NCBI RefSeq assembly: GCF_006345805.1
Contig: NC_043003.1
Span: forward strand, 116,188,001-116,252,000
Length of the DNA stretch: 64,000 nucleotides
Origin: Octopus sinensis
Lineage: Eukaryota
Direction: 5' to 3'
Of the stretch, positions 1-54,709 are shown piece after piece. The position numbers and the translations under genes are program-made. Below the pieces are notes generated by a model. It was not told the DNA's origin and did no database searches. It worked only from the letters and a program-made list of their open reading frames with translations. Each line of letters opens with the position of its first letter. Position 1 is the stretch's first letter.

Positions 1-172
1 ACATTATGTAGATGTAAGAGATACATTACATATAAAACAAGTTATATAATGACAGTCCAAGATATAAGATTTACAGAAGATACCAAGAAAGAATAGTAAC
101 GTCCAAAAGAGTCGGGTTCTTTCTGAGTTAAATCTACGTTCGTATTACCTTTGTTACTAATATGACACAGAA

Positions 173-398: not shown

Positions 399-632
399 TT
401 TATTCTCACGCTATTTATTTGCGTTATTTTAAGTACATATTCTTGGGTTGTTAAATATATATGTAATCTTGGAATACCAGAAAAGATCATAATTAATGTT
501 TCCTTTTTCTTGACATATTACGGAAAAGAGTGGGATTTGAAACTGATAGTTTATGGTAGAATTGTATGTTCTAGAATATAGAATTTTGATGACAGGTCAG
601 ACAGAGTGCCGGTATCTGCATAATAGTATATA

Positions 633-865
633 AGGCGGCGACCTGGCAGAAACGTTAAGCACGCCAGGCGAAATGCGTAGCCGTATTTCGTCTGCCGTTA
701 CGTTCTGAGTTCAAATTCCGTCGAGGTCGACTTTGCCTTTCATCCTTTCGGGGTCGACAAATTAAGTACCAGTTACGCACTGGTGTCGATGTAATCGACT
801 TAATCCGTTCGTCTGCCCTTGTTTGTCTTCTCTGTGTTTAGCCCCTTGTGGGCAATAAAGAAATA
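633..865 (+). mobile_element. tRNA-derived SINE family S1 (probably one of the described octopus SINEs), with 21-bp TSD
   Basis: Head GGCGGCGACCTGGCAGAAACG, core CCTTTCATCCTTTCGGGGTCGA, tail CCCCTTGTGGGCAATAAAGAAATA; TSD 611-631 / 866-886 (3 mismatches); many copies in window. Confidence 0.9.
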
Positions 866-1329
866 GGTGTCTGTATAATAGCATATTAAAATTCAGTAAC
901 AACTGCAGCGTAGAAATTTAACCGGTATGATAAAGTCAGTTTACATATACGTTTAGCTGACAAACACAGCTAACGTGTGATAGTAAATTGTAATTACACT
1001 CGAGTCAGTTGTCACTATGCATCATGCCATTGTGCATGTACCAGCTATGCTTAAACAAGTGTCAGCCGTTTACCAGTGGACATGGGATTAAAGTTTATTA
1101 TGATGGTTCACAATGAGAACAGAAGGATGATAGCTCGTTTTTCTGTTTGAGGGACAGCGTAAGCTAGTAGGGGATGTGCGGGAATAGAGATGGCAGCGAC
1201 GGTCACCAGGTCAAAGATAATCCATGTTAAATTCATGAAGTCGTTTTAGAATCCCAGGGATTCGAGATGAATTGGAACGAGGTTTACATCTGGCGTAGTA
1301 CAAGGTTTGTATGAATCCACCTAATAATG

Positions 1330-8310: not shown

Positions 8311-8542
8311 TATTTCTTTATTGCCTACAAGGGGCTAAACATAGAGGGGACAAACAAGGACAGACAAACGGATTAAGTCGATTACATCTACCCCAGTGCG
8401 TAACTGGTAATTTATTTATCGACCCCGAAACGATGAAAAGCAAAGTCGACTTCGGCGGAATCTGAGCTCAGAACGTAACGGCAGACGAAATACCGGTAGG
8501 CATTTCGCCCGGCGCGCTAACGTTTCTGCCACCTCGCTACCT
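8311..8542 (-). mobile_element. SINE S1 copy in (TA)n
   Basis: Reverse complement of the S1 consensus, flanked by TA repeats. Confidence 0.9.
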
Positions 8543-8749: not shown

Positions 8750-9270
8750 ACGCCGAGTCAATCACCCCCTTCCAGACGCCCTTCCAACATTCGCTGCTTC
8801 TCAAATCTCTCCAAATCTTCTTATTTACCATCCACGTAATTGGTTTTCTTCTTCCTGCTTTCCTAATAATTTTACTTTTTTTATTAACAATCACTCTAAC
8901 CTCATTTTCTTTCTAATCAGTTATTGAAAATATTTAATTATCTCTCTTTCATGTTGTCTAATAAATTGTCTCTTATATTGCCAATATTAAGATTTCATTA
9001 TCTCTTACTCTTCTTTTTTCTTTTCTTTCTTTTTTCCTTACCGTCTCTGTTATCCTCACAAGTCTTCTAATCTCTTTGAAAATGCCCCAATCTCAGCTCC
9101 ATGAAGCAGAATCGAATATACGTACAATTTTAATAATCATTTAGTATTTCATATGAATACTTCCTAATGATATGTCAAACAAATTTCAAATCACTTTCTA
9201 ATTATTTCTTTTTCCCTTTGACTTCTACGTCACACAACTCGGTTCCTCTTCAATTGTCTTTAATGAAATT
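8750..9270 (-). mobile_element. Old RTE-like LINE 3' remnant
   Basis: Minus frame KLYVYSILLHGAEIGAFSKEIRRL resembles the RTE 'ILLYGSEAWT' region; heavily decayed. Confidence 0.4.
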
Positions 9271-9394
9271 GTAAATTTATAGTGTCACTCCTGTTTTTCT
9301 TTCTCTTTCGTTTGATTAATAGTATTGATTTTCATTTCTTTACGTATATCTCTTTCCTCCATCACATTCAGTTTTTATTTACTATGATTACAAA

Positions 9395-12925: not shown

Positions 12926-13466
12926 TCTCATGATCATCATAACTAACAAGGAAAATGCTTATTCAACGTAATTCGCTCTCAGGTACATATGCATGCTGAG
13001 ACTAAACCTATTGATTCATGCCGTTTCCCAGCTCTCTCAAAGTATTTAAGGAACTTACAGGAGAACAGAATAATCCTCTCCCCTATCCTTCCCCTTCCGA
13101 ATGACGAAGTAGTAAAGACTTCACCAGACTGGAACACAATCAGTTTCCACACTTTTCCACAAGCCAGTCTCTTTTGGCCATCAGAGAGTAGGAATGTGCC
13201 TATCATTGTCTCTTAAACAACGGATGGTCAGGAAATATCACAGTGGAATCTACCAATAATTGCATGTGTCATACATAGCACAGCCGTTGTTAGACATAAC
13301 TCCACATTTTACTAAGGAGAGACACGGGTTCCGCGTGTGCTTAACTGTTCCATTTTTGTGAATACATCTTCAGCTAACCGAAAGTAATTTCGGAAATGTA
13401 GAGACTGTCTATAATTATCAGGTACGTTTTTTCATATGTACTTCCCCAGTCGATAAAGCACATACC

Positions 13467-14400
13467 TATTTCTTTATTGCCCACAAGGGGCTAAACACAG
13501 AAGGGACAAACACGGACAGACAAACGGATTAAGTCGATTGCATCAACCCTAGTGTGTAAGTGGTACTTAATTTATCGACCCCGAAAGGATGACAGGCAAA
13601 GTCGACCTCGGCAGAATTTGAACTCAGAACGTAACAGCAGACAAAATACATATTTCTTTATTAGCCACAAGGGGCTAAACGTAGAGGGGACAAACAAGGA
13701 CATACAATGGTATTAAGCCGATTACATCGACCCCAGTGCGTAATTGGTACTTAATTTATCCACCCCGAAAGGATGAAAGGCAAAGTCGACCTCGGCAGGA
13801 TTTGAACTCAGAACGTAACGGCAGACGAAATACCTATTTCTTTATTAGCCACAAGGGGATAAACATAGAGGGGACAAACAAGGACATACAATGGTATTAA
13901 GCCGATTACATCGACCCCAGTGCGTAATTGGTACTTAATTTATCCACCCCGAAAGGATGAAAGGCAAAGTCGACCTCGGCAAGATTTGAACTCAGAACGT
14001 AACGGCAGACGAAATACCTATTTCTTTATTAGCCACAAGGGGCTACACACAGAGAGGACAAACAAGGACATACAACGGTATTAAGCCGATTACATCGACC
14101 CCAGTGCGTAATTGGTACTTAATTTATCCACCCCGAAAGGATGAAAGGCAAAGTCGACCTCGGCAGAATTTGAACTCAGAACGTAACGGCAGACGAAATA
14201 CTTATTTCTTTATTAGCCACAAGGGGATAAACATAGAGGGGACAAACAAGGACATACAACGGTATTAAGCCGATTACATCGACCCCAGTGCGTAACTGGT
14301 ACTTAATTTATCGACCCCGAGAGGATGACTGGCAAAGTAGACCTTGGCAGACGAAATACCGTTAAGCATAATGCCTGGAGCGCTTGCGTTTCTGCTACCT
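13467..14400 (-). repeat. Tandem array of SINE S1: one headed unit plus four head-less 184-bp units
   Basis: Unit starts at 13467, 13651, 13835, 14019 and 14203 (period 184). Confidence 0.95.
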
Positions 14401-15628: not shown

Positions 15629-16296
<668 letters not shown>

Positions 16297-16365
16297 ATCT
16301 CATTATTATTATTATTATCATCTTCATTATTATCATTATTATTATTATTATCATCCTTATTATCA

Positions 16366-16396
<31 letters not shown>

Positions 16397-16400
<4 letters not shown>

Positions 16401-17069
16401 TAGTTTTATTTTTATAGCGTGCTTTCACTTCACTACCGAGCGCAGCTCTGTGTGCCTTAGGTATGTGCTGTGATTTGTTGTGATGCTCTGATGGTTATTG
16501 TATGGAAAGTGTTCTGGGTAGGATGTGTGCAGTGCCTAGTAGTGCAATTTTCTGTATGTTATATGTGTTTGTAAGTCCTGGTGTTTTTGTTATGTATTTG
16601 TCTGAATATTTTTTTATCATGCCTAATACACCTACTATGATAGGAATTGTTTCTGTTTTCAGATTCCACATTCTAGTTACCTCTATTTCCAGGTCTTTGT
16701 ATTTTGAGAGTTTCTCCATTTCTTTTAGAGACACGTTGTCATCTGCCGGTATTGATACATCAATTAGAAAGCATTTTTTTTTCTTCATGATCTCTGACAA
16801 CTATATCTGGTCTGTTGGCCTTAATTTCTCTATCTGTGTGTATCGGCATATCCCAGAGTATGGTTGCTTTCTCGTTTGGTGTGACCTTTTCTGGTGTGTG
16901 CCTATACCATCTTTTTTCTGTTGTTATTTCATAATGTTGGCATAGCTTCCAGTGTATGTAGGTTCCAATTCTGTCATGTCTGTGAATATATTCCTTCTTA
17001 GCCAGGACTGGGCAGCCAGAAATAATATGAATTATTGTTTCTTGTCTATCTCCACATATTCTGGAGTTA
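16397..17069 (-). mobile_element. R4/Dong-type LINE 3' end (CCHC zinc knuckle plus REL endonuclease), family A
   Basis: CGDRQETIIHIISGC..HRHDRIG..KANRPDIVVRDH..CFLIDVSIP..EKLSKYKDLEIE..IQKIALLGTAHIL; one frameshift; 3'UTR ends ACTACTG(AAT)n. Confidence 0.9.
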
Positions 17070-17070
17070 C

Positions 17071-17130
<60 letters not shown>

Positions 17131-17213
17131 CATCATCATTATTATCCTTATTATTATTATTATTATCATCATCATTATTATCCTTATTATTATTATTATT
17201 ATCATCATTATTA

Positions 17214-17248
<35 letters not shown>

Positions 17249-17291
17249 TATTATTATTATTATTATCATTATTATTATTATTATTATTATT

Positions 17292-17771: not shown

Positions 17772-17970
17772 TCGAAGACGGCCAATTGGCAGCATCTTTA
17801 GCACGCCGGGCAAAATGCTTAGCGCCCTTTCATCCGTCCTTACGTTCCGAATTCTAATTTTCATCTTTCCGTGGTCAATGATATAAGTTCTAATTGAAAT
17901 CTGGTGTCCATGTAATCGACTTAACCCTTCCCATAACTTTCAAGCCTTGTGCCTATAGTGGAAAAGGTTA
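17772..17970 (+). mobile_element. Degenerate SINE with S1-like head and a different tail (S2), ending in (ATT)n
   Basis: TTAGCACGCCGGGCAAAATGCTTAGCG head; tail GCCTTGTGCCTATAGTGGAAAAGGTTATTATT. Confidence 0.65.
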
Positions 17971-19786: not shown

Positions 19787-20205
19787 AAGGCGGGGAGCTG
19801 TGGCAGAATCGTTATCACGCCGGGCGAAATGCTTAGCGGTATTTCGTCTGCCGCTACGCTCTGAGTTCAAATTCCGCCGTGGTCGACTTTGCCTTTCATC
19901 CTTTCGGGGTCGATTAAATAAGTACCAGTTACTTACTGGGGTCAATATAATCGACTTAATCCGTTTGTCTGTCTTTGTTTGTCCTCTCTGTGTTTAGCCC
20001 CTTGTGGGTAGTAAAGAAATAGGTATATCGTCTGCCGCTACGTTCTGAGTTCCAATTCCGCCGAGGTCAACTTTGCCTTTCATCCTTTCGGGGTCGATTA
20101 AATAAGAACCAGTTGCGCACTGGAGTCGATGTAATCGTCTTGATCGGTTTGTCTGTCTTTGTCTGTCCCCTCTGTGTGTAGCCCCTTGTGGGTAGTAAAA
20201 AAATA
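19787..20205 (+). mobile_element. SINE S1 dimer (headed unit plus head-less unit)
   Basis: Junction AAAGAAATAGGTATATCGTCTG at about 20015-20035, same junction type as the 13467 array; TSD GGTATTTTGTT (19772) / GGTATATTGTT (20206). Confidence 0.9.
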
Positions 20206-20584
20206 GGTATATTGTTCTATGTGCTTCTTATTGTGCCAACTCACCAATGTTGAAAATAGCGAATGAAATAATAGGTGACTCGTGATATTTGAAATGGAAT
20301 ACCCCCTCCCCTCAAAATATTGCTTGTCCTGAATCTCGTAATGCACTGGCGTCGCTTTTATGGGTATTGGTGTGATCTCGGTCATTCATGGGACTTGTGG
20401 GTTCTAGTGCTCAAGAAACACATCACTGCTGGCGTTGACGAAATAATTATTCAATAAGCATAATTATTCAGTTGATATGAGGAGCAAATCAATAGTCAAG
20501 CAATGCTTAAATTCGTTTATAACTGATTATTTCACAGATTTCAAAAGACTGGTGTTGTCTGAATACAGTATTCTATGTGAGAAA

Positions 20585-20955
20585 ATCGGTTTCAAATGTT
20601 GGCACAAGACCAGCAAATTTGGGGTGAGGGGGTAAGTCAAACCTGGGTGGTATTTGAACTCAGAACATAAGGACGAACGAACTGCCGCGCAGCATTTTTC
20701 TCGGCATGCAAACAATTCAACCAGCCTAGCGCCTTATTCTATGCGAGAATATAAGCAACAACTTGAGAGCGCTGGCCAAACCGCTCACCGGCATTTTGTC
20801 CGTCTTTACGCTCTGAGTTTAAATTCCGCTGTGGTCGACTTCGTCTTTCATCATTTCGAGGCCGATAAACAAGAATCAGTTCAGCACTGAGATTACTGTA
20901 ATCTCCTTACTCACTCCTCCGAAAATGCTGGCCTTGTGCCAATATTTGGAATCAA
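20585..20955. mobile_element. Two degenerate S2-type SINE pieces, head-to-head (minus 20585-20735, plus 20768-20955)
   Basis: TTTGAACTCAGAAC and CTGAGTTTAAATTCCGCTGTGGTCGAC motifs; tails TTGGCACAAGACCAGC and GCTGGCCTTGTGCCAA. Confidence 0.6.
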
Positions 20956-39689: not shown

Positions 39690-39919
39690 GCGACGAGCTG
39701 GCAGAATCGTTAGCACGCCGGGCGAAATGCGTAGCCGTATTTCGTCTGCCGTTACGTTCTGAGTTCAAATTCCGCCGAGGTCGACTTTGCCTTTCATCCT
39801 TTCGGGGTCGATAAATTAAGTACCAGTTACGCACTGGGGTCGATGTAATCGACTTGATACCTATGTCTGTCTTTGTTTGTCCCCTCTGTGTTTAGCCCTT
39901 TGTGGGTAATAAAGAAATA
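39690..39919 (+). mobile_element. SINE S1 nested in the head of an older SINE (head B, tail Y; about 39668-40170)
   Basis: After the S1 tail the sequence continues GGTATTCGGCTCACGATTGTAA.., matching the 41786 family. Confidence 0.85.
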
Positions 39920-40662
39920 GGTATTCGGCTCACGATTGTAATGTCTTGTGTGTTTAAGATCTTCCAGCGTGCTCTGTCCTTAAGCAAGGCACTCTATTTC
40001 ACGTTGCTCCAATCCACTTAGCTAGCAAAAATGAGTTGTACCTGTGTCACATTCTGTGTCACACTGAATCTCGCCCAGAGCTATGTTAAGATTACGCGTG
40101 TCTGAGAAGTAATCAACCGACTTGCACGTTTATTTCACGAGCAGACTGTTTCTATGATCGGATCAAAAGTGTCAGTTTTACTTTATTTTTGCTATGTAAT
40201 AATATCACTACTAATAATAAACAGCATTATACAAAATTATTAGATCCCATCACCAACAATTTCTGTAGGTGACAGTCAGTCAAATATACACGAGTTTAAG
40301 TTACAGCTCTTTCCTATCTCAAATACGGGAAGTCGGTGCTGATCTAATTGGAACTAAATTGTTAATTAAGCATTAAGCAAAATGTCATAATATATGTAAC
40401 AAATCAAATTGTCTCCATTACGTCACGATTCCAGATGAATCTGTGCTGCTTCAAAAGTATATTATTCTCACTTAAATGTTTGGTAAGACAGGAACATTCA
40501 AGTTAATGCAAAACACTCATATTTTCTGACATATATTTAAACTGCTGTTTTACAACTTAAGGCCATCTGTGAATCAACATATGTATGCATGTATGTATGT
40601 ATGTATATATGTATATATATATATATACCTATCTATCTCTCTATCTCTCTCTCTCTCTCTCT

Positions 40663-43631: not shown

Positions 43632-45653
43632 ACATACGTGCTATGAATTGCAACATATTCATATACAAATGCATGCACGCACGCACACACACATATATCA
43701 ACCTGACCCTTCATCTATGTGCAAGAACCTATATATTTACATATTCTGTGCAACGTTCTTAGCTGTGCATATTGTTAAGTGTTTTTTTTAAACACTGTAC
43801 TTTAGGGTTTGTATTTTCTGGTCTATTTCTCAACATTAAATATCTTCTATTAGAAAAATCTTGACAGAAACATTATCTTCTGTATTCCTCATATAAACGT
43901 CAATGAAGAATTATCGGTTATATTTTTCCATTATTCCATCTTTCTGTTTTGTTATTATTTTATTATTTTCGGAAGTTTTGTTCAATGATAATGGAAACAA
44001 AGGATTCGCTTTGTTTCATTTTTAAATATAACTATACAAAAATACCTTTTAAATCTCCGAAAGGTTGTATATCACGAAAGTCTTTACTTGTAGTTTCTTT
44101 TTTCTTTTTTTTTATAACTTTGTTTGAGGAAAGCATGCTTGAAAACGAGCATAACTTTACAGACGTAGTTCTTGTCAACTTAATAACCTTTTCCATGCAG
44201 AAATTTAGACAGAAGCGGCAAACATTTAACGTTTCCGGATTTCATTTTCTACTTTTGAAAACTGTAGACAGAATTGGTACTTGTAGCCAAATTAGCGGAA
44301 GAGAGTTTAAAGCAAGACATGCCATGTCAAGATTTGCAACGATATTTGCAGGCAATACCATTTTACTTCCTGAAATATTTTCAATACTAATCGTGGTATT
44401 TAGCTACAGGTAAAAGCAAAATATCTAACCATCTGAATGACGGGGAAGTAAGAGCAAAAATATATCTGACATTTAGAGCCAATTCTGTTAAAAGATCATG
44501 GCATTCAATGTTCTATATTATTTCAAATCATACAGTTAAATATTGATAGTTAAATGAGTCTAGTCTCAAATATAGATTTGTTTCTATTTTTCTATTTAGA
44601 TGTATCATCTACAAAACCAGCTTATGAATTATTGACTAGTAAACATATATATGTATAAATCTTACGTTGACAAAATTGCATGGCCATTTTCCGTCACCGT
44701 TTGATAGAAAGAAACATTCACTTTTAATGTTCAAATCAAAGACAGATAATATAAAATGCTGAATATTTCGGATTTTCATCAATTAAGTATATAAATAACT
44801 TCGGTCATAAATTAAGTGATAGTTAATTAATGCAAATAAAGTTATAATGGAGTTCACTGGAGATGAATGAAACACCTTTATGAGTGAGGGGTATCTTTAT
44901 TCTCCGAATGAGATATGAAATCGCAACATTGATTATAATCCAAAAGTATGATGTAAATAAGTATTAGTTCGAGGATATAAACCAACTGATGTCGGTTGAG
45001 TCGAACCTTAATGATAATTTACTTCAGTTTTGTGAAAATAAACAGTTGCATATTGAAAAGAATATATATATTTCAAACATTTATATTGCTTTGGTTGTGT
45101 GGGCCAAATTGTGAGTCATACTTTTGGTTATACATTTACATGTGTTTGAGTTTGAAGGGATACAAAACAAATGCCGGAAGGAAAGAGAAGAAACAATTGA
45201 AACAAATCAATTCATTTACGCATCAAATTTCCCTCCCTAATTTATATGTAAAGAACTTTATCACGGTCAAGACAGAACCATTTGTACACACACGAACACA
45301 CACATACATATGCACACGCATACTCACACACGCACTTACATACACACAAACCCACAGGCACAAACGCACAGACATAAATACAAATGCGTAACTGTATGTA
45401 AGAACCTTCGGTAACTGTTTTGCACTGTAACCTCAGGTCGACTAACCGATATGGTAGACGGGAAGTGAATGTGTGTGTGATTGAGTATACACATATACAA
45501 AAATGTATATATGCACATACAGGCATACATATACGCATGTGTGAGTGTCTGTGTGTCTGTTTGTCGCCCAACACCGCTTGTCAACGTGTGTTGTTGTGTT
45601 TATATCCCCGTAATTTGGGGCTTCGGTGAAATAGACAGGTACAGAACATATCA

Positions 45654-45883
45654 GGCGGTGAGCTGGCTGAGATGTTAGAACGCCGGGAGAAATGCGTAGA
45701 CGTATTTCATCTGCCGTTACGTTCTGAGTTCAAATTCCGCTGAGGTCGACTTTGCCTTTCATCCTTTCGGGGTCGATTAAATAAGTACCAGTTACGCACT
45801 GGAGTCGATATAATCGACTTAATCCCTTTGTATGTCCTTGTTTGTCCTCTCTGTGTTTAGCGCCTTGTAGGTAGTAAAGAAAT
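45654..45883 (+). mobile_element. SINE S1 with 19-bp TSD, nested in an old S3 copy (about 45390-45995)
   Basis: TSD AGGTACAGAACATATCAGG (45637-45655) / AGGTACAGTACATATCAGG (45884-45902). Confidence 0.9.
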
Positions 45884-46298
45884 AGGTACAGTACATATCA
45901 GGTTTTAAAAACAACAAAAAGATAAAAACTGAGAGCTTCTTCAAGGTTGTACCCCCACATGGTCGCAATCTAATGACTGAAACAGGTAAAAGATATTCGA
46001 TAGATACTTTTCAAATGTGTTTGAAGCAATACCGAGCACCGACTACTACAATCTGTAATGAATACTTCCTTATTTATTTTCTAATTTGCAGGTGATACCG
46101 ACTATGTCTAGCAGCTAGCAGTCAAACAGATTTTTTTTCATTACTATTTACCAATGTCAGGTATAACAGATCACTTTCAAACATATTAATGGTCTATAAT
46201 ATTTTTAAGAACAAAAACAATGCTGAGAACCACAAATTGATAGAATATAGACACTGTCGATAGCATTATTACAAACACATCATATAATATAATATTAT

Positions 46299-46377
<79 letters not shown>

Positions 46378-46396
46378 CATAGATAGATACATAGAT

Positions 46397-46727
<331 letters not shown>

Positions 46728-46732
46728 CAGAC

Positions 46733-46791
<59 letters not shown>

Positions 46792-46794
46792 CAG

Positions 46795-49700
46795 ATATGT
46801 TTCTTTGTTTCTTTATTAGCCACACAGGGCTGCACACAGATAGAACAAATTACAAGGTAGAGCTTTTCTTTTGAAGGTTTAAAAAATAAAAAAAATAAAA
46901 AATAAAAAAATAAAATAAAAATAAAATAAAAAAGGGGGGGTCGATCAAAAGGGATCGTAAAAGGAGAGAAAGAGGACAAAAAAAAGGGGGGGTTAAAAAA
47001 AATGGGGGAGAGGAAAAAAATTGATCGTTACCACAGAAATGTCAATATGAAGTGTAAAGGGGAGGACAGGTGAGGTTTACCCGTGGAAAGAAAAGCCTAC
47101 GGAAAAGACCACGGTAACCTCGGTCAATGAAGTCACATGTTATATTTCTTTTTTTTTTTTTTTTTTTTGCAAATAAGCAACTCTCTGTATTAATTTTTAC
47201 GGTTCATAGAATCATAGTCAAGGTGGCTTCGTCATTCATACGTGCCATCCTTGCTACATTCACCCATCTTTTTTTAAAACATTCACTAGACAAAACTTGC
47301 CTCTCTACTCTCACTTTTTTCTTCAAGTGATACTTGAAGAAGTTGATGAGAGATTGACCAGAGAGGAAAGTGTTTGTCTCTAATCCTTTCAGACGCGTCC
47401 ACCAGATACATTCTTTCGCCATAGCCACAAGTATGATAAAAATAGCTCTTCCTTCCCGTTTGAAGGAAGGAGGCGTGACGATATTAACGATAGACTCGGC
47501 TGATAAACCGACACGTCCCACACGTGACAGCAGTCGTTCGACATAACCCACAGGTGGGAAATTGCTGGACACTGCACGATTGCGTGCAGAGCGGTTTCGT
47601 CGCTCTGCCCGCATCTCGGGCAGGTCGGCCCCGTGTTTCTCGAGCCATGCCTATAGAGCTTATCCCGAACGGGTAGCGCTTCTCGGTAGCACCGCCAGGC
47701 CAGGGATCTCTGGAAGTTGTCCATAGGTCCCGGGCCGAAAGTCGTTTGAAACAGGCGGGTCAGGTATTCCTCGTCGACGCCCAGGTTTGCCCCGAGCTCG
47801 TCGTCGTACCTCCCCTCCACTAATCCCCTATAGAATGCTTTGGTTGTGTTGAAGTCACTCAAGGTCGACCCGGGACGGCAGAGTTGCTTGAGAGCAACGC
47901 GACACTGGCGGTGCCATTCGCCCTTCTTCGGTCTCTTTTTGATCCACGACTGTAGTTCGGTCATGGAGACGAGTTGCGGGAATGCGTGCCTCACAAACGG
48001 CGACCACACCTGTTCACCGTCGTCTACATAGAGCCGGAGATGTCGCAGTCTCAGCGCGTGTCTGCGCATCATCAACCACGGCATGCCCAGCCCTCCTTTT
48101 AACGGGTGTTGACAGCAAATGGATCGCCTGACCATCGGGACGCATCCTTTCCACAAGAAGCGGAAGAGGATGCGTTCTAGTTTGGTGATGGTAGGGTCGG
48201 GACAAGGTACGACGGTCAGGCGGTAGTAGATGATGGACGCGATGTACGCGTTCACCACCTCCGCCCGACCTTTTAGGGACAGTTTCCTCTCGGCCCATTG
48301 CTGGGCGAGAGTGACCACCCTACTCGTTATCTCGTTCCAGTTCTTCTCCATTTGGAGGTCCGGACCGAACCAGACCCCGAGCAACTCAACCGGGCCGTCT
48401 GTCCAGCGTCCCACGACGGAGGTACTGGTGGACGGCATGGGCTTGCTTCTCCAGGTGCCGAGCCGTAAGCCCACTGACTTTTCCCGGTTGATTTTTGCTC
48501 CTGTCACCGCTTCGTAGTCTTTCAGTGTCTCGCCGACCCGCTCGATGTGCTCGTGGCTTGACACTATGACGGTAACGTCGTCCGCGTATGCAGACACGCT
48601 CGTCCCGCATCCTAATTCTCGCGGGATGCCCCTCAGAGTCGCCAGCTTCCGCAGTAGTGGCTCAAAGTCAATACGTATAGAAGCGCCGAGAGGGGGCATC
48701 CCTGACGGACCGAACGTGCAATGTCGAAGGGTCTCGATAGATGTCCATTTACGCGAATTACCGAACGGATGCCTCTGTACAAGGCAGCTATCCAGCCGCG
48801 GAAGACGGGACCGAAACCAGCCGCTCTCAGGACTGCCTCCAAGTATCGATGGTCTACCCTATCAAAGGCTTTCGATTGATCCAAGTTGATCAGGGCCCCA
48901 CCCATGCCAGGTTCGTTAACTACCCTGTCTATGATGTAGCGCATCAGATGGAGGTTGTCATGGATGCTCCGCCCGGCACGGCGCACGTTTGTGCGTTGTC
49001 GACCAGTTTCTCCATGACAAGCGCCAACCTCTTGGCTAACACCTTTGTCAAAATTTTCAGGTCTGCATTGAGCAGAGTGATTGGCCTAAAGTTATCTATA
49101 ATGTTTCCTTGTTTGGATCTTTCTTCAGCAGAGTTACAGCTCCTCGACTCACAAAACCGGGTATGCTCCCGTTTTGCTGCCAGTTGCAGTATACCGCTGC
49201 CAAGACGTCTCCAAACAAGTCTGGCATACAATAGTAAAATTCGTAGGGTAGACCATCCAAACCCGGTGATTTGTCCCTCGAGCATTCTGCCATCGCTTCC
49301 CGCACTTCCGCCGCCGTGATGGCACCTTCGCAGCACCCTGCCTTTCTTGTCGAGAGTCGTGGCAGGCTATGTAGGTAGGCACTGAAGTCTACCCTACGTT
49401 CTTGCCCTCCACTCGTCCCGAACAGTCGGGCAAAATGCTGCTGAAAGGCCTCACACATTTTACTTGGATCGAGCAATTCGCGCCCCTGTTCATCTACCAG
49501 TGACCGAATGGTGGCTTTGTTGCCCTGTTGCGCCTCTGCCACCCGGGCCTCTCTCGCGGCTCCAACACCTTCGTTCCTTAGAGCACGCATCCTAGCTCTG
49601 ACAGCACATCCTTCGTGTTTGGCGTTGAAGTGTTGGTCGAGGGCCAACCACGCCGCCAAAACGTCGGATGCGATGCCGCTTCTAATTGCCTCTTCTAGCT

Positions 49701-49947
49701 TCTTAACTAGCTCACCCTCTACTCTATTTCTATCTATGGCTAGTGCTTTGCTGTACCTAATCGCTTCTGCTTTTACTGCTCTCTTGAGGGCAAACCACCA
49801 TTTGTTGTTGATGATGGCTCCCGTCAAAGCCCTCTTTACTAGTGTGCTAATCCGGTCTCTGAAAACTTGTCTGGACGGGAATGATGCGTTCAGTTTCCAG
49901 TACCCAGGACCCTGTCTATGTGCCTTATCTAAGTCTAGCGTACACAT
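46795..49947 (-). mobile_element. 5'-truncated Tx1/L1-clade LINE: end of APE, RT, zinc-finger region and 3'UTR
   Basis: GPGYWKLNASF, RDKSPGLDGLPYEFY, NFRPITLLNADLKIL, INLDQSKAFDRVDH, SVRQGCPLS, SAYADDV, CPRCGQSDETALHAIVQC; overlapping ORFs joined by about four frameshifts; GC-rich relative to flanks; (TAGA)n on both sides. Confidence 0.95.
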
Positions 49948-50024
<77 letters not shown>

Positions 50025-50025
50025 C

Positions 50026-50124
<99 letters not shown>
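49948..50124. repeat. (TAGA)n microsatellite
   Basis: Direct reading. Confidence 0.95.
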
Positions 50125-51395: not shown

Positions 51396-52602
51396 ATATA
51401 TATATGTGCGTGTGTTTATAAATATATATAAAGAGTTATTTTGCTTGCAATGGTTTAATATCTTTAGATTAAACTGCTGGAGTGAGGCATGTCCCTTGTA
51501 TTAAAGACTTTTGTTACCTGAAACATAAGGGGTCGGTTTATCGATTTCTTTAATGGCTTTGCTGAGGTGACTGGGGAATGTAAATATATGCACGACCACC
51601 CTTGGACGGTTTTGAATGACCATAGAAAGTGCGAGCCCTCTAACTAAAAAATTGTGGATTTGTATAAAGGATACACACACACATTTTGCCGTTTATTTAT
51701 AGTGATACTATGACAGAAAATACGGTATTGATGCATCTGGAATATTTTAATTGCAATTTCATTCAGTGGAGCTATCATGGTGTTTAAAACAAATGACTTG
51801 GATGATTAAAAAGGGAATACATTCATTATAAACATAAGTAAATGTGTATTATATTCTTATGCTATGTATCTGCTACAGAGAGAGTGAACATTCAAAAGTT
51901 TGTGAATATTTCGCTCCTTCTATCATGTATCCTAACTCTGTTTAATTTAATTCTATGTATTTCATAAGAAAAAAGGGGCAAATTCCCCAACTTGAATCTG
52001 CTGTGCAGTGGGTTGAGAGACATTTTAGCGAAAACTCTCAAAGAAACATCATTATTTAACATTCGTCTTTCCAATTGCATATGTAGAGGAACTCTTCCAC
52101 TAGAGGAACATATCTTCCAATTCTTCTTCATTGCAAGCAAATGAGGGAATTTCAGCAGAAGCAATGAACCGTCACGAAGTTCTGAGGGAAGGAAGTGTGC
52201 AGGCTGTTCGAAATCTCAAGAAAGCGATAGATTTCTACAATGCTGACACTTTCACAAAATATTTAGAGATAAAAGTAGGCCTAAAATATGAAAAGCGGTA
52301 GTGAAAGACACCAAAAGCTGGGAAAGCAAATAATGCAAACAATGGCAGGAATCACTGGGATTTAAGGAATTATTTCAAGTGTCTAGCAGATACACAATTC
52401 CCAAGCTTATAGCTCTGTGACCAAAAGGTATTAGGGAATATGGTAGAATCTCTTGAACAACGCAAAGTGTGTCCTAAAGTAAAACCCCGGCAGTTAAGAA
52501 ATAAAGACAGAAAAGTTCTCTGAAGGCGTGTGTGTGTAGGTAGGTACGGAGGGATTTAGGTAGGTAGGTAGGTAGGTAGGTAAGTAGGTAGGTAAGTAAG
52601 TT

Positions 52603-53072
52603 AAGGTGGCGAGCTGGCAGAAACGTTAGCACGCCTGGCAAAATGCTTAGCGATATTTTGTCTGCCGTTACATTGTGAGTTCAAATTCCGCCGAGGTCGA
52701 CTTTGCCTTTCATCCTTTCGGGGTCGATATATTAAGTACCAGTTACGCACTGGGATCGATGTCATCGACTTAATAACTATGTCTGTCCTTGTTTGTCCTC
52801 TCTGTGTTTAGCCCCTTGTGGGTAATAAAGAAATAGTTAAGTAGGCGAACTGGCAGAAACGTTAGCACGCCGGGCGAAATGTTTAGCGGTATTTCGTCTG
52901 CCGCTACGTTCTGAGTTCATATTCCGCCGAGGTCGACTTTGCCTTTCATCCTTTCGGGGTCGATATATTAAGTACCAGTTACGCACTGGGGTCACATAAT
53001 CGACTCAATCTGTTTGTCTGTCCTTGTTTGTCCTCTCTGTGTTTAGCCCCTTGTAGGTAATAAAGAAACAGG
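52603..53072 (+). mobile_element. Two complete S1 SINEs in tandem inside (TAGG)n
   Basis: Units about 52603-52834 and 52841-53070; (TAGG)n on both sides. Confidence 0.9.
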
Positions 53073-54709
53073 TTGGTAGGTAGGTAGGTAGGTAGGTAGG
53101 TAGGTAGGTAGGTAGATAGGTAGGTAGGTAGGTAAGTAATTAGTTATCTCACGAGGTGCTTTATAAGCCAAACCCGGGGAAATTCAGGTAACAGTCAAAG
53201 TTTACTCACTGACATTATGCATAGCCATTCAGTAAATACAAGTGTACTCGTCTAATAATACTTACACACACACACATGAATATGTGTATATATTTATATG
53301 CATGTACGTATATACGAATTTACATATATATGCATGTATGCATGCATTGTGTATGTATGCAGGGGAAGTATTTATATATAATATACGAATGTGTGTATAT
53401 ACGTAGGTATATGTATGTTGCATCGTGTGATTAATAATTAATCTGCAAACACTTTTAATGAGTAATAATTGTCTTACGACTGATATCTTGAACACTCTAG
53501 AGTTCTATACATTTAGTATCATTTCATACAGTACACATCCTCATATAATCGTATATACAATGCCTCACATTACTAGTTTGGCCTGTAGTTCACGATCACA
53601 TTACTTGAATGACTTGAGAATTAAATGTTTGTTTCGTAAGACACAGGGTGAATGTTGTACAAATACGTTCTACACACATTATATCAGGCATCCGTTCTCC
53701 CTCTTGAATTTCTTCAATTTCAATTTCGTTTATTCGAGGAAAACTTCAAGGCCCACTTAGCCAGGAGAGTTCAGCCCGGCGTTACTACTAATTAATTCGT
53801 GATATATTATTTGAAGATAGCAGAGAAAATATCGTGTTCTTTTGGGATTTCGTGTTTCTGATATCGGTATATCGTTATGGTAATTGAAAAAGCAAATGCA
53901 CTGTGAGGATAGGTAGGAATTAATCATATCTGTTTATTCAATATTTCAGTTTCGTGTCACAGGATATCGGCATTTCTTAAATGTAAATACCACGTCAAAT
54001 ATATGGTATCACACGATAACATATATATGTTCCGCCATGTGATAATAGGGATTATATTTATTTTAGACCCTACAAAACAAAAAGCAATTCAGATATGCAT
54101 CGTTATTATCTCATCCAATCATATTTTTCTATAGTGTTTTGACTGTTGACAGAAGTTGTTCTGGAATTTATCAACAGCCATTCCAACGCTATCAATATCC
54201 CTGCAGTTCTTAACATATATGATACCGGTTGCATATATGACTGGCTTTCTCCAGGCTGTGAAACATGGTCTCTGAGAATATATTCTGGGTGAATATCATT
54301 TTCAGGGTTTTGAGTATTCAATTTGTTCACAGTTTTCAAGTTTTTATTGTAAGTTAGCCTCATTTACTTGAGTCGATCAAATTTTCAGTTGGTTTATTTT
54401 TTTAAAGATGTTAATGTTTTAAGAACTACAAGTATATACACACGGATATTTCACGATTTTCAAGCCGGACAAGAATACATTTATTTAAATATAGCCAGTA
54501 TCTTACGGTCGGAGATTATACTTTATCAACATTCTAAAGAATATTTTTATACATACATAGAGTCGTGTGTGAATATGTATATGTATGTTTGTGTATTACA
54601 TAAAGGTATTACTTGCCTGCGTATATACCGACATACTAACTTACACAAACACACACACGTGTATCTTTGTAGAAAGATAGAAAGAGAGAGGAAGATATAT
54701 ATATATATA

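Follow-up and report, generated by a model that had tools for sequence, protein, structure and literature searches.

The LINE remnant, SINE S1 and their common 3' end

The window analysed here is a stretch of 64,000 nucleotides from Octopus sinensis (contig NC_043003.1, positions 116,188,001 to 116,252,000 of the forward strand); all positions given below refer to this stretch unless another sequence is named. The window comes from an AT-rich genome, and microsatellites make up 13% of the window. It contains the remnant of a long interspersed nuclear element (LINE) on the minus strand (49947-46798) and eight loci of a short interspersed nuclear element (SINE), designated S1. An earlier note had assigned the LINE to the Tx1 clade and had proposed that its 3' tail is shared with S1, which would make the two elements partners. 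The sharing of a tail by a SINE and a LINE is a textbook mechanism, and a burst of SINEs has often been linked to the evolution of octopus genomes.

The local consensus of S1 comprises about 239 nt; it starts with AGGCGGCGAGCTGGCAGAA... and ends with ...GTCCTCTCTGTGTTTAGCCCCTTGTGGGTAATAAAGAAATAGGTAT. The eight loci are 92-96% identical to this consensus. The S1 copies terminate at ...AATAAAGAAATAGGT(AT), and target-site duplications of 13-15 bp come next, which shows that the SINE really ends with this tail. The sequence at the end of the LINE was compared with this tail. In the plus-strand reading, positions 46808-46857 (TTTCTTTATTAGCCACACAGGGCTGCACACAGATAGAACAAATTACAAGG) and the S1 array unit at 14021-14067 are identical at 42 of 47 positions of a global alignment that contains one 3-nt gap, which reproduces the alignment of the earlier note exactly. 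The corresponding local score of 34 lies about 16 standard deviations above the values obtained for shuffled sequences (8.95 ± 1.56, maximum 17.5, n = 2000). Furthermore, a blastn search of the window with the S1 unit as a query recovered the site at 46808-46857 with an E-value of 1.7e-9. A 23-nt tail motif, for which up to three mismatches were allowed, was found 14 times in the window, namely at 13 3' ends of S1 and once at 46808-46830; no match is expected according to 100 shuffles. For both S1 (14021-14067) and the LINE (46808-46857), the minus strand is the 5' to 3' direction at the aligned sites, and the common segment is therefore the 3' end of each element. The 3' ends of SINE and LINE are thus homologous, and the segment is terminal in both, as is characteristic of a stringent-type pair. 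The identity between the LINE tail of the window and S1 is 83-89%.

Downstream of the stop codon at position 47204, the LINE continues with a 3' untranslated region (UTR) of about 400 nt, the tail, and CAAAGAAACATATCTGTC(TATC)n. The (TATC)n microsatellite is present on both sides of the element, and there is no LINE tail upstream of the 5' array. We conclude that the LINE was inserted into one microsatellite and that its 3' end is position 46798. The claim that the tail constitutes the LINE 3' end thus holds, as the LINE stops there and adjoins (TATC)n. The element is truncated on its 5' side: compared with a full-length relative from Argonauta, it begins only in the last part of the endonuclease region. 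Its second open reading frame (ORF2) is interrupted by at least four frameshifts, which are located near 49108, 48990, 48665 and 47550-47600. This copy is dead. The coordinates of the LINE and of the S1 copies are compiled in Table 1.

Table 1. Positions of the LINE segments, the adjoining microsatellites and the S1 copies in the window.
Feature	Position	Strand	Remarks
ORF2 remnant of the LINE	47204..49947	-	End of endonuclease/linker, RVT_1, C-terminal zf-RVT (CCHC)
LINE 3' UTR	46858..47203	-	T-rich, low complexity, internal A24 run near 47136-47160
LINE 3' tail common to SINE S1	46808..46857	-	5'-CCTTGTAATTTGTTCTATCTGTGTGCAGCCCTGTGTGGCTAATAAAGAAA-3', with putative hairpin AGCC-CUGUGU-GGCU, then AAUAAA
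Final LINE bases and microsatellite junction	46790..46807	-	CAAAGAAACATATCTGTC, AAAGAAAC duplicated, no poly(A)
Microsatellite (TATC)n / (ATAG)n adjoining the 3' end of the LINE	46607..46797	.	
Microsatellite (TATC)n / (ATAG)n adjoining the 5' end of the truncated LINE	49948..50124	.	
S1, full-length copy	631..868	+	95% identical to local consensus
S1, copy within (TA)n	8311..8537	-	
S1 array, one head and 4.8 body+tail units of 184 bp	13462..14395	-	Contains the aligned unit 14021-14067
S1 head and two body+tail units	19787..20210	+	
S1, full-length copy	39690..39924	+	96% identical to consensus
S1, full-length copy	45653..45888	+	15-bp target-site duplication acagWacatatcagg
S1, two full-length copies head to tail, within (AGGT)n	52602..52839 and 52838..53073	+	

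Next to the LINE, a T-rich stretch on the plus strand (46467-46606, ...ttgttgttttattgttttgtaaactctccct) resembles the 3' UTRs of the LINE relatives L003 and L012 introduced below, without their terminal tail. It is flanked by (ATAG)n at 46299-46400 and 46607-46797, and (TTTTTTCTCTCC)n occupies 46400-46466. This stretch may be a plus-strand piece of a further LINE that belongs to this group and lies in the same microsatellite.

Two of the S1 loci, 13462-14395 and 19787-20210, are arrays that consist of one head and multiple body+tail units of 184 bp. At each junction, ...AAATAGGTAT is joined to TTCGTCTGCC, and the 3' end of the SINE has a GGTAT microhomology with SINE positions ~49-53. Because of this microhomology, the arrays suggest that a reverse transcriptase (RT) switched templates, leaving one SINE RNA at an internal position and resuming at the 3' end of a second, or that unequal exchange took place. 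Older partial S1-like copies, which are 73-78% identical to the consensus, are located at 17775-17927 (+), 20641-20736 (-) and 20789-20912 (+). They indicate that the SINE was active in more than one wave. By eye, box A/B-like motifs can be found in the S1 consensus (TGGCAGAA... and the box-B-like GAGTTCAAATTCC). As judged from these motifs and the literature, S1 may be transcribed by RNA polymerase III, and the designation of S1 as presumably tRNA-derived follows the literature on octopus SINEs. The body of S1 (…TTTCATCCTTTCGGGGTCGATAAATTAAGTACC…) may resemble the MIR core; a central CORE domain of ~60 bp is the mark of the CORE-SINE superfamily.

The tail in related LINEs and in the SINE of Argonauta

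In order to be the end of a LINE family and not of a single copy, the tail has to occur in relatives. LINE relatives with an amino acid identity of 64-83% originate from Argonauta hians, an octopod, and from host-contaminated metagenome contigs; the nearest named relatives of the LINE proteins in the window are those of A. hians. Three of these relatives possess the whole tail. L003, which is encoded on a metagenome contig and has 69% amino acid identity, ends with ...GGGCCCTTGTGGCCAATAAAAGAAATC(ATT)n 270 nt past its stop codon. L012 from Argonauta ends 229 nt past the stop codon with ...CCCCTCTATGTTTTTGCCCTTGTGGCTAATAAAAGAAATA(ATT)n, its terminal sequence also being written as ...GTCCCCTCTATGTTTTTGCCCTTGTGGCTAATAAAAGAAATA(ATT)n, and the tail of L001, likewise from Argonauta, is ...GTGTCGGCCCTTGTGGCTAATAAAGAAATC. 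The L012 tail matches the S1 tails of the window with 86% identity over 59 nt (E = 5.6e-13). L010 has a partial tail, as its contig stops within the hairpin described below, beside (CA)n. In L004, which has 83% amino acid identity, the 3' UTR is 88% identical over 61 nt to block 47069-47128 of the LINE 3' UTR; it is colinear with the UTR of the window beyond the A24 run and into the first half of the tail, where the contig ends. The tail is thus an integral and conserved part of the LINE. Copies of the LINE that lack it, which would have spoken for an S1 fragment, were not seen among these relatives, and L001, L003 and L012 all contain it.

These comparisons bear on the notion that 46808-46857 is a 5'-truncated S1 fragment that lies beside the real end of a LINE that itself has no tail. 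Just 42-50 nt of S1 are present at this site, and the A24 run in the 3' UTR could pass for a poly(A) end. However, the sequence that follows the A-run is colinear with the 3' UTR of L004, and the tail, whole or in part, concludes the UTR of four further LINE relatives that come from different genomes or samples. In addition, the GGCT stem arm and the 3-nt insertion of the window tail are of the LINE type and occur in no S1 consensus copy, and the whole unit 46798-49947 is flanked by one and the same microsatellite. We consider a fragment of S1 at this position to be most improbable.

The A24 run (47136-47160) lies 45 nt past the LINE stop codon, is not present in L004, and mimics a poly(A) end. 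It was considered as the LINE end (~47150) and rejected because the UTR of L004 is colinear beyond the run. A further peculiarity concerns L001 of A. hians, where the LINE 3' UTR is present twice in tandem (positions 6013-6655 of L001). The tail of the first copy is degenerate (...CAGCCAGGTGGCTAAGAAAGAAAT), and the two copies are separated by a short stretch that contains an A-run and a box-B-like GGTTCAATC.

Argonauta hians has a SINE of its own, which was found in L001 (7620-7860 on the minus strand, 8800-9060 and 9100-9310) and in L012 (3915-4165). The head of this SINE is unlike that of S1, the body is related (…GATCGATAAAACAAGTACCAGTG…GGGGTCGATGGTATCGACTTT…), and the copies have target-site duplications of 13-14 bp. 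Its tail, ...TCTGTGTTCGGCCCTTGTGGCTAATAGAGAAATC, and the LINE tail of L001 from Argonauta agree at 42 of 44 positions and have the terminal GAAATC in common. The S1 tails of the window, in turn, reach their best score with the LINE tail of the window (29-33, compared to 20-28 for other LINE tails). Hence, in two octopod genomes, the tails of the SINEs are closest to those of the LINEs present in the same genome. This matching by lineage is the pattern expected if the LINE machinery selects the tails of SINEs. As the Argonauta SINE has a related body and a LINE-type tail, the body and tail modules predate the split of the two octopod lineages; the heads differ.

The tail contains a putative hairpin with a 4-bp G/C stem and the loop CUUGU, which is directly followed by AAUAAA. 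In 14 SINE and LINE tails, 89% of the cells of the hairpin are paired, compared to 71 ± 4% after shuffling, and none of 500 shuffles reached the observed value. When the partner was slid, pairing was reduced to 11-45%. Two of the four pairs display compensatory changes: in S1, a G-C pair has become C-G, and in distant LINEs, a C-G pair has become G-C. The LINE relatives L006, L008, L051 and L052, which have just 40-45% amino acid identity, likewise contain a C-run, AGGC-CTTGT-GCC, and AATAAA about 30 nt downstream. RNAalifold retains just a 3-bp stem. A hairpin is a reasonable inference from these data but not a demonstration, because the folding energy is not significant, the covariation events are few, and the structure was picked by eye.

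The distant relatives help to decide on the direction of the exchange. Conceivably, the direction was the reverse, or the two elements have no functional link; template switching would then have given the LINEs a tail that stems from S1, and S1 would be moved by other means. The RT does seem prone to template switching, as judged from the S1 arrays with their GGTAT microhomology, the duplicated 3' UTR of L001, and tandem arrays of LINEs. In contrast, GGC-CUUGU-GCC and a downstream AAUAAA are present in LINE relatives at 40-45% amino acid identity, and no S1 match was found at the loci of these relatives. In the LINE lineage, the motif thus predates S1. Moreover, it is found at a constant place, the end of a conserved UTR. 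A transfer from S1 to the LINEs and the lack of a functional link are accordingly both very unlikely.

Some of the distant relatives are arranged in tandem. In the ENA sample ERZ21867824, L006/L007 and L008/L009 are positioned head to tail with periods of ~6.6 and 6.8 kb, and one contig of tandem LINEs was assembled as a 31.5-kb "circle". These relatives are full-length, have 40-43% amino acid identity, and possess an intact ORF2 of 1153-1155 amino acids. A search of Rfam identified no RNA gene between the tandem copies, and none of the LINE loci matched a known RNA.

None of the LINE copies has an A-run at its 3' end, and the same is true for all S1 copies. The LINEs end next to a microsatellite or to unique DNA. 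In relaxed recognition of the L1 type, which is exemplified by Alu and B1, only poly(A) is common to SINE and LINE; here, a specific tail of 50-59 nt is shared instead. As neither element has poly(A), the 3' recognition looks stringent.

Probable clade of the LINE and proposed driver of S1

In the full-length relative from Argonauta, ORF1 has a CCHC knuckle, and the element further encodes an endonuclease of the apurinic/apyrimidinic (AP) type (Exo_endo_phos), RVT_1 and zf-RVT. This combination of AP endonuclease, RT and CCHC, with neither RNase H nor a restriction-like endonuclease, corresponds to the domain content of the Tx1 clade. The copy in the window retains RVT_1 and zf-RVT, and its endonuclease was lost by 5' truncation. 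The best solved match of the Argonauta relative is human L1 ORF2p with 178 bits, compared to 97 bits for R2. For the RT core of the window copy (290 amino acids), the "putative 149 kDa protein" of the fish Labeo rohita scored 190 bits, sea-turtle relatives scored 157-168 bits, and human L1 ORF2p scored 76 bits. The Labeo protein serves as a Tx1 reference only by its source-given name, which is derived from Tx1 ORF2. It was found by means of an approximate Xenopus Tx1 ORF2 probe. No identical entry was retrieved with this probe; its best matches were sea-turtle proteins (60-73%), and it was used solely to find vertebrate relatives. It is therefore likely that the LINE is a Tx1 element, and the label given in the earlier note is consistent with the contrast of 190 to 76 bits.

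Source-given names were of little use as clade labels, since nearly all homologues lack a name, including 10 of 10 representatives from an exhaustive search. A protein-pattern scan of JGI metagenome contigs confirmed no relative. With an 18-mer tail pattern, 38 matches were obtained in these contigs, none of which had a LINE ORF or extended tail similarity; they were rejected as chance matches, several of them occurring in bacterial contexts. A full-text literature search for RT motif strings yielded no papers. Among mollusc LINE clades, Tx1 has been found but not L1 proper (PMC10294476), and 13 recently active L1-Tx1 families were reported for O. vulgaris (PMC13282606).

Very probably, S1 is a non-autonomous SINE that owes its final 50-59 nt to the 3' end of an octopod Tx1-like LINE family of the L1 superfamily, by which it is copied in trans. 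The following mechanism can be envisaged. The ORF2 protein with its AP-type endonuclease and RT would recognise the 3' tail of its own LINE RNA, which consists of a pyrimidine-rich stretch, the 4-bp G/C hairpin with the CUUGU loop, and then AAUAAAGAAAU. Target-primed reverse transcription would start at the end of the tail and would not need poly(A). S1 RNA, which has the same tail, would be copied in trans and give rise to the target-site duplications of 13-15 bp. The AAUAAA could serve to end LINE transcripts of RNA polymerase II just past the element. Our comparisons show the homology of the tails, their terminal position in both elements, their conservation among LINE relatives and their matching by lineage. 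Which LINE subfamily was the active driver is inferred, as are the binding of the tail by the ORF2 protein and the initiation of reverse transcription both in cis (LINE RNA) and in trans (S1 RNA), by analogy with LINEs of the stringent type, in which a 3' stem-loop is bound by ORF2 (PMC4176376, PMC3747384). The earlier note had named this or a sister Tx1 family as the driver; our results support this proposal, and the reference to a sister is apt given that the copy in the window is dead.

Alternatively, S1 might be mobilised by a LINE of another clade such as RTE or CR1, and its likeness to Tx1 might be due to an older tail exchange or a former partnership. The LINEs that have expanded most in octopus are RTE-BovB, CR1 and Dong-R4 (PMC8967140, PMC13282606). 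SINE families such as CORE-SINEs are known to change partners, and the target sites of S1 are somewhat unlike the microsatellite context of the LINE. These points are opposed by the lineage-specific match of SINE and Tx1-like LINE tails, which extends to the terminal bases in two octopod genomes and argues for a continuing co-evolution rather than an old relic: the SINE tail of each genome fits the Tx1-like LINE tail of that genome best. Moreover, the one other LINE fragment of the window has an unrelated tail, so that a better match of S1 to another LINE, which would have contradicted the proposal, was not seen (fragment 16400-17060). We therefore consider a driver from another clade unlikely.

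This second element is the 3' part of an unrelated retrotransposon of the non-LTR (non-long terminal repeat) type on the minus strand (16400-17269), with (AAT)n at 16228-16397 and 17067-17291. It encodes a C-terminal CCHC followed by ...RPDIVV..., which is the restriction-like endonuclease type, and has a (TAA)n-type microsatellite on both sides. It ends with ...CTATAAAAATAAAACTACTG(AAT)n, and its tail has no similarity to S1. It resembles elements of the Dong/R4 type, which are found in a (TAA)n target.

Several points weigh against a Tx1-like driver of S1. The LINE copy in the window is not itself the source of S1, because it is dead and its tail is just 83-89% identical to that of S1; the driver must be an intact sister copy. 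The Tx1 label is derived from one source-given name and a contrast of pairwise scores and not from a tree. Evidence for the tail comes from one window, about six independent LINE 3' ends and two genomes, and the comparison of S1 with other LINE clades of this genome comprised one fragment (16400-17060). The folding energy of the whole tail is no better than that of shuffled sequences (z = -0.9 to +0.35). The hairpin is tiny, was picked by eye, and its covariation corresponds to about two evolutionary events. In the head of S1, no tRNA was called by ARAGORN or Rfam. Finally, the insertion targets differ. Of five LINE 3' junctions, one is with (TATC)n (the copy in the window), two are with (ATT)n, one is with (CA)n and one is with unique DNA; thus four of five LINE 3' ends abut microsatellites, whereas most S1 copies are located in unique DNA. 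One common endonuclease should give rise to more similar targets.

Comparison with known SINE/LINE pairs

Among the repeats of Octopus genomes, SINEs form the largest class and account for ~8-12% of the DNA (PMC13282606, PMC8967140); they have been annotated as tRNA-Core and tRNA-Deu (PMC8967140). In the open-access literature on octopus repeats, no LINE partner is named for them, with Repbase and Dfam notes being outside the scope of this search, and no open-access report of tail sharing was found for the pair of S1 and the Tx1-like LINE. The co-evolving tail points to a specific Tx1-like family as a driver of octopus SINEs and makes the question directly testable. The tail is old, as it is common to Octopus-like and Argonauta genomes and is present in its core form in far more distant Tx1 relatives. 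More tentatively, and with a confidence that falls just short of even, we propose that it was a Tx1 lineage of the stringent type that enabled the expansion of the SINE families, which make up about one tenth of octopus genomes. This would be the first tail-sharing Tx1 pair and the first one in an animal element of the L1 superfamily. If true, sequence-specific 3' recognition exists in the L1 superfamily of animals. An animal example would be added to the short list of L1-superfamily LINEs that have a specific 3' tail instead of poly(A), which bears on the question of whether stringent recognition is ancestral in this superfamily (Ohshima 2012/2013; PMC3472496, PMC3747384).

The survey of Ohshima (2013) lists 58 SINE/LINE pairs, which mostly belong to CR1/L2 and RTE (PMC3747384). 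Tails of the L1 clade occur in 3 of the 58 pairs, all from maize or Chlamydomonas and none from an animal, a mollusc or Tx1 (PMC3747384). The statement of the earlier note that tail sharing is unusual for the L1 clade agrees with these numbers. The known L1-clade pairs are ZmSINE2/ZmSINE3 with LINE1-1_ZM of maize and SINEX-3_CR with L1-1_CR of Chlamydomonas (PMC3472496, PMC3747384). As in the octopod pair, an L1-superfamily LINE has a conserved 3' hairpin that is copied by the SINE. However, the maize and Chlamydomonas pairs end in poly(A) or T runs, whereas the octopod pair is from animals, belongs to the Tx1 branch and has no homopolymer tail.

The experimentally proven stringent pair is UnaL2/UnaSINE1 of eel, which belongs to the L2 clade (Kajikawa & Okada 2002, cited in PMC3747384 and PMC4176376) and includes a tRNA-type SINE. 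It resembles the octopod pair in having a common 3' tail of ~50-60 nt with a small stem-loop and without poly(A); recognition by ORF2 is proven in eel and proposed for octopods. The two pairs differ in that UnaL2 ends with (TGTAA)n for slippage, whereas the octopod LINE is L1/Tx1-like, ends with AAUAAAGAAAU(C) and abuts various microsatellites.

A Tx1-clade LINE has also been proposed as the driver of another SINE family, namely Tx1-Mar for the crocodilian SINEU (Kojima 2015, PMC4494074). In that case, the link consists of a common insertion target, Mariner-N4_AMi, and of U1/U2 5' heads in both elements, and all SINEU have poly(A) tails; for S1, the link is a 3' tail that is not poly(A). Microsatellites are targets of several Tx1 families (PMC4494074), for example (TC)n for Kibi, (TTC)n for Koshi and (TTCC)n/(TTTC)n for crocodilian Tx1 (Kojima & Fujiwara 2004 via PMC4494074). 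Similarly, the LINE of the window is inserted in (TATC)n and its relatives abut (ATT)n and (CA)n. In contrast to Kibi, Koshi and crocodilian Tx1, the five junctions of the octopod LINEs do not display a single repeat type. With the tRNA-derived SINEs OK, OR1 and OR2 of octopus (Ohshima & Okada 1994, cited in PMC4758252), S1 has the host group, the abundance and, as judged from their description, the general build of a putative Pol III-type head, a conserved body and a short tail in common.

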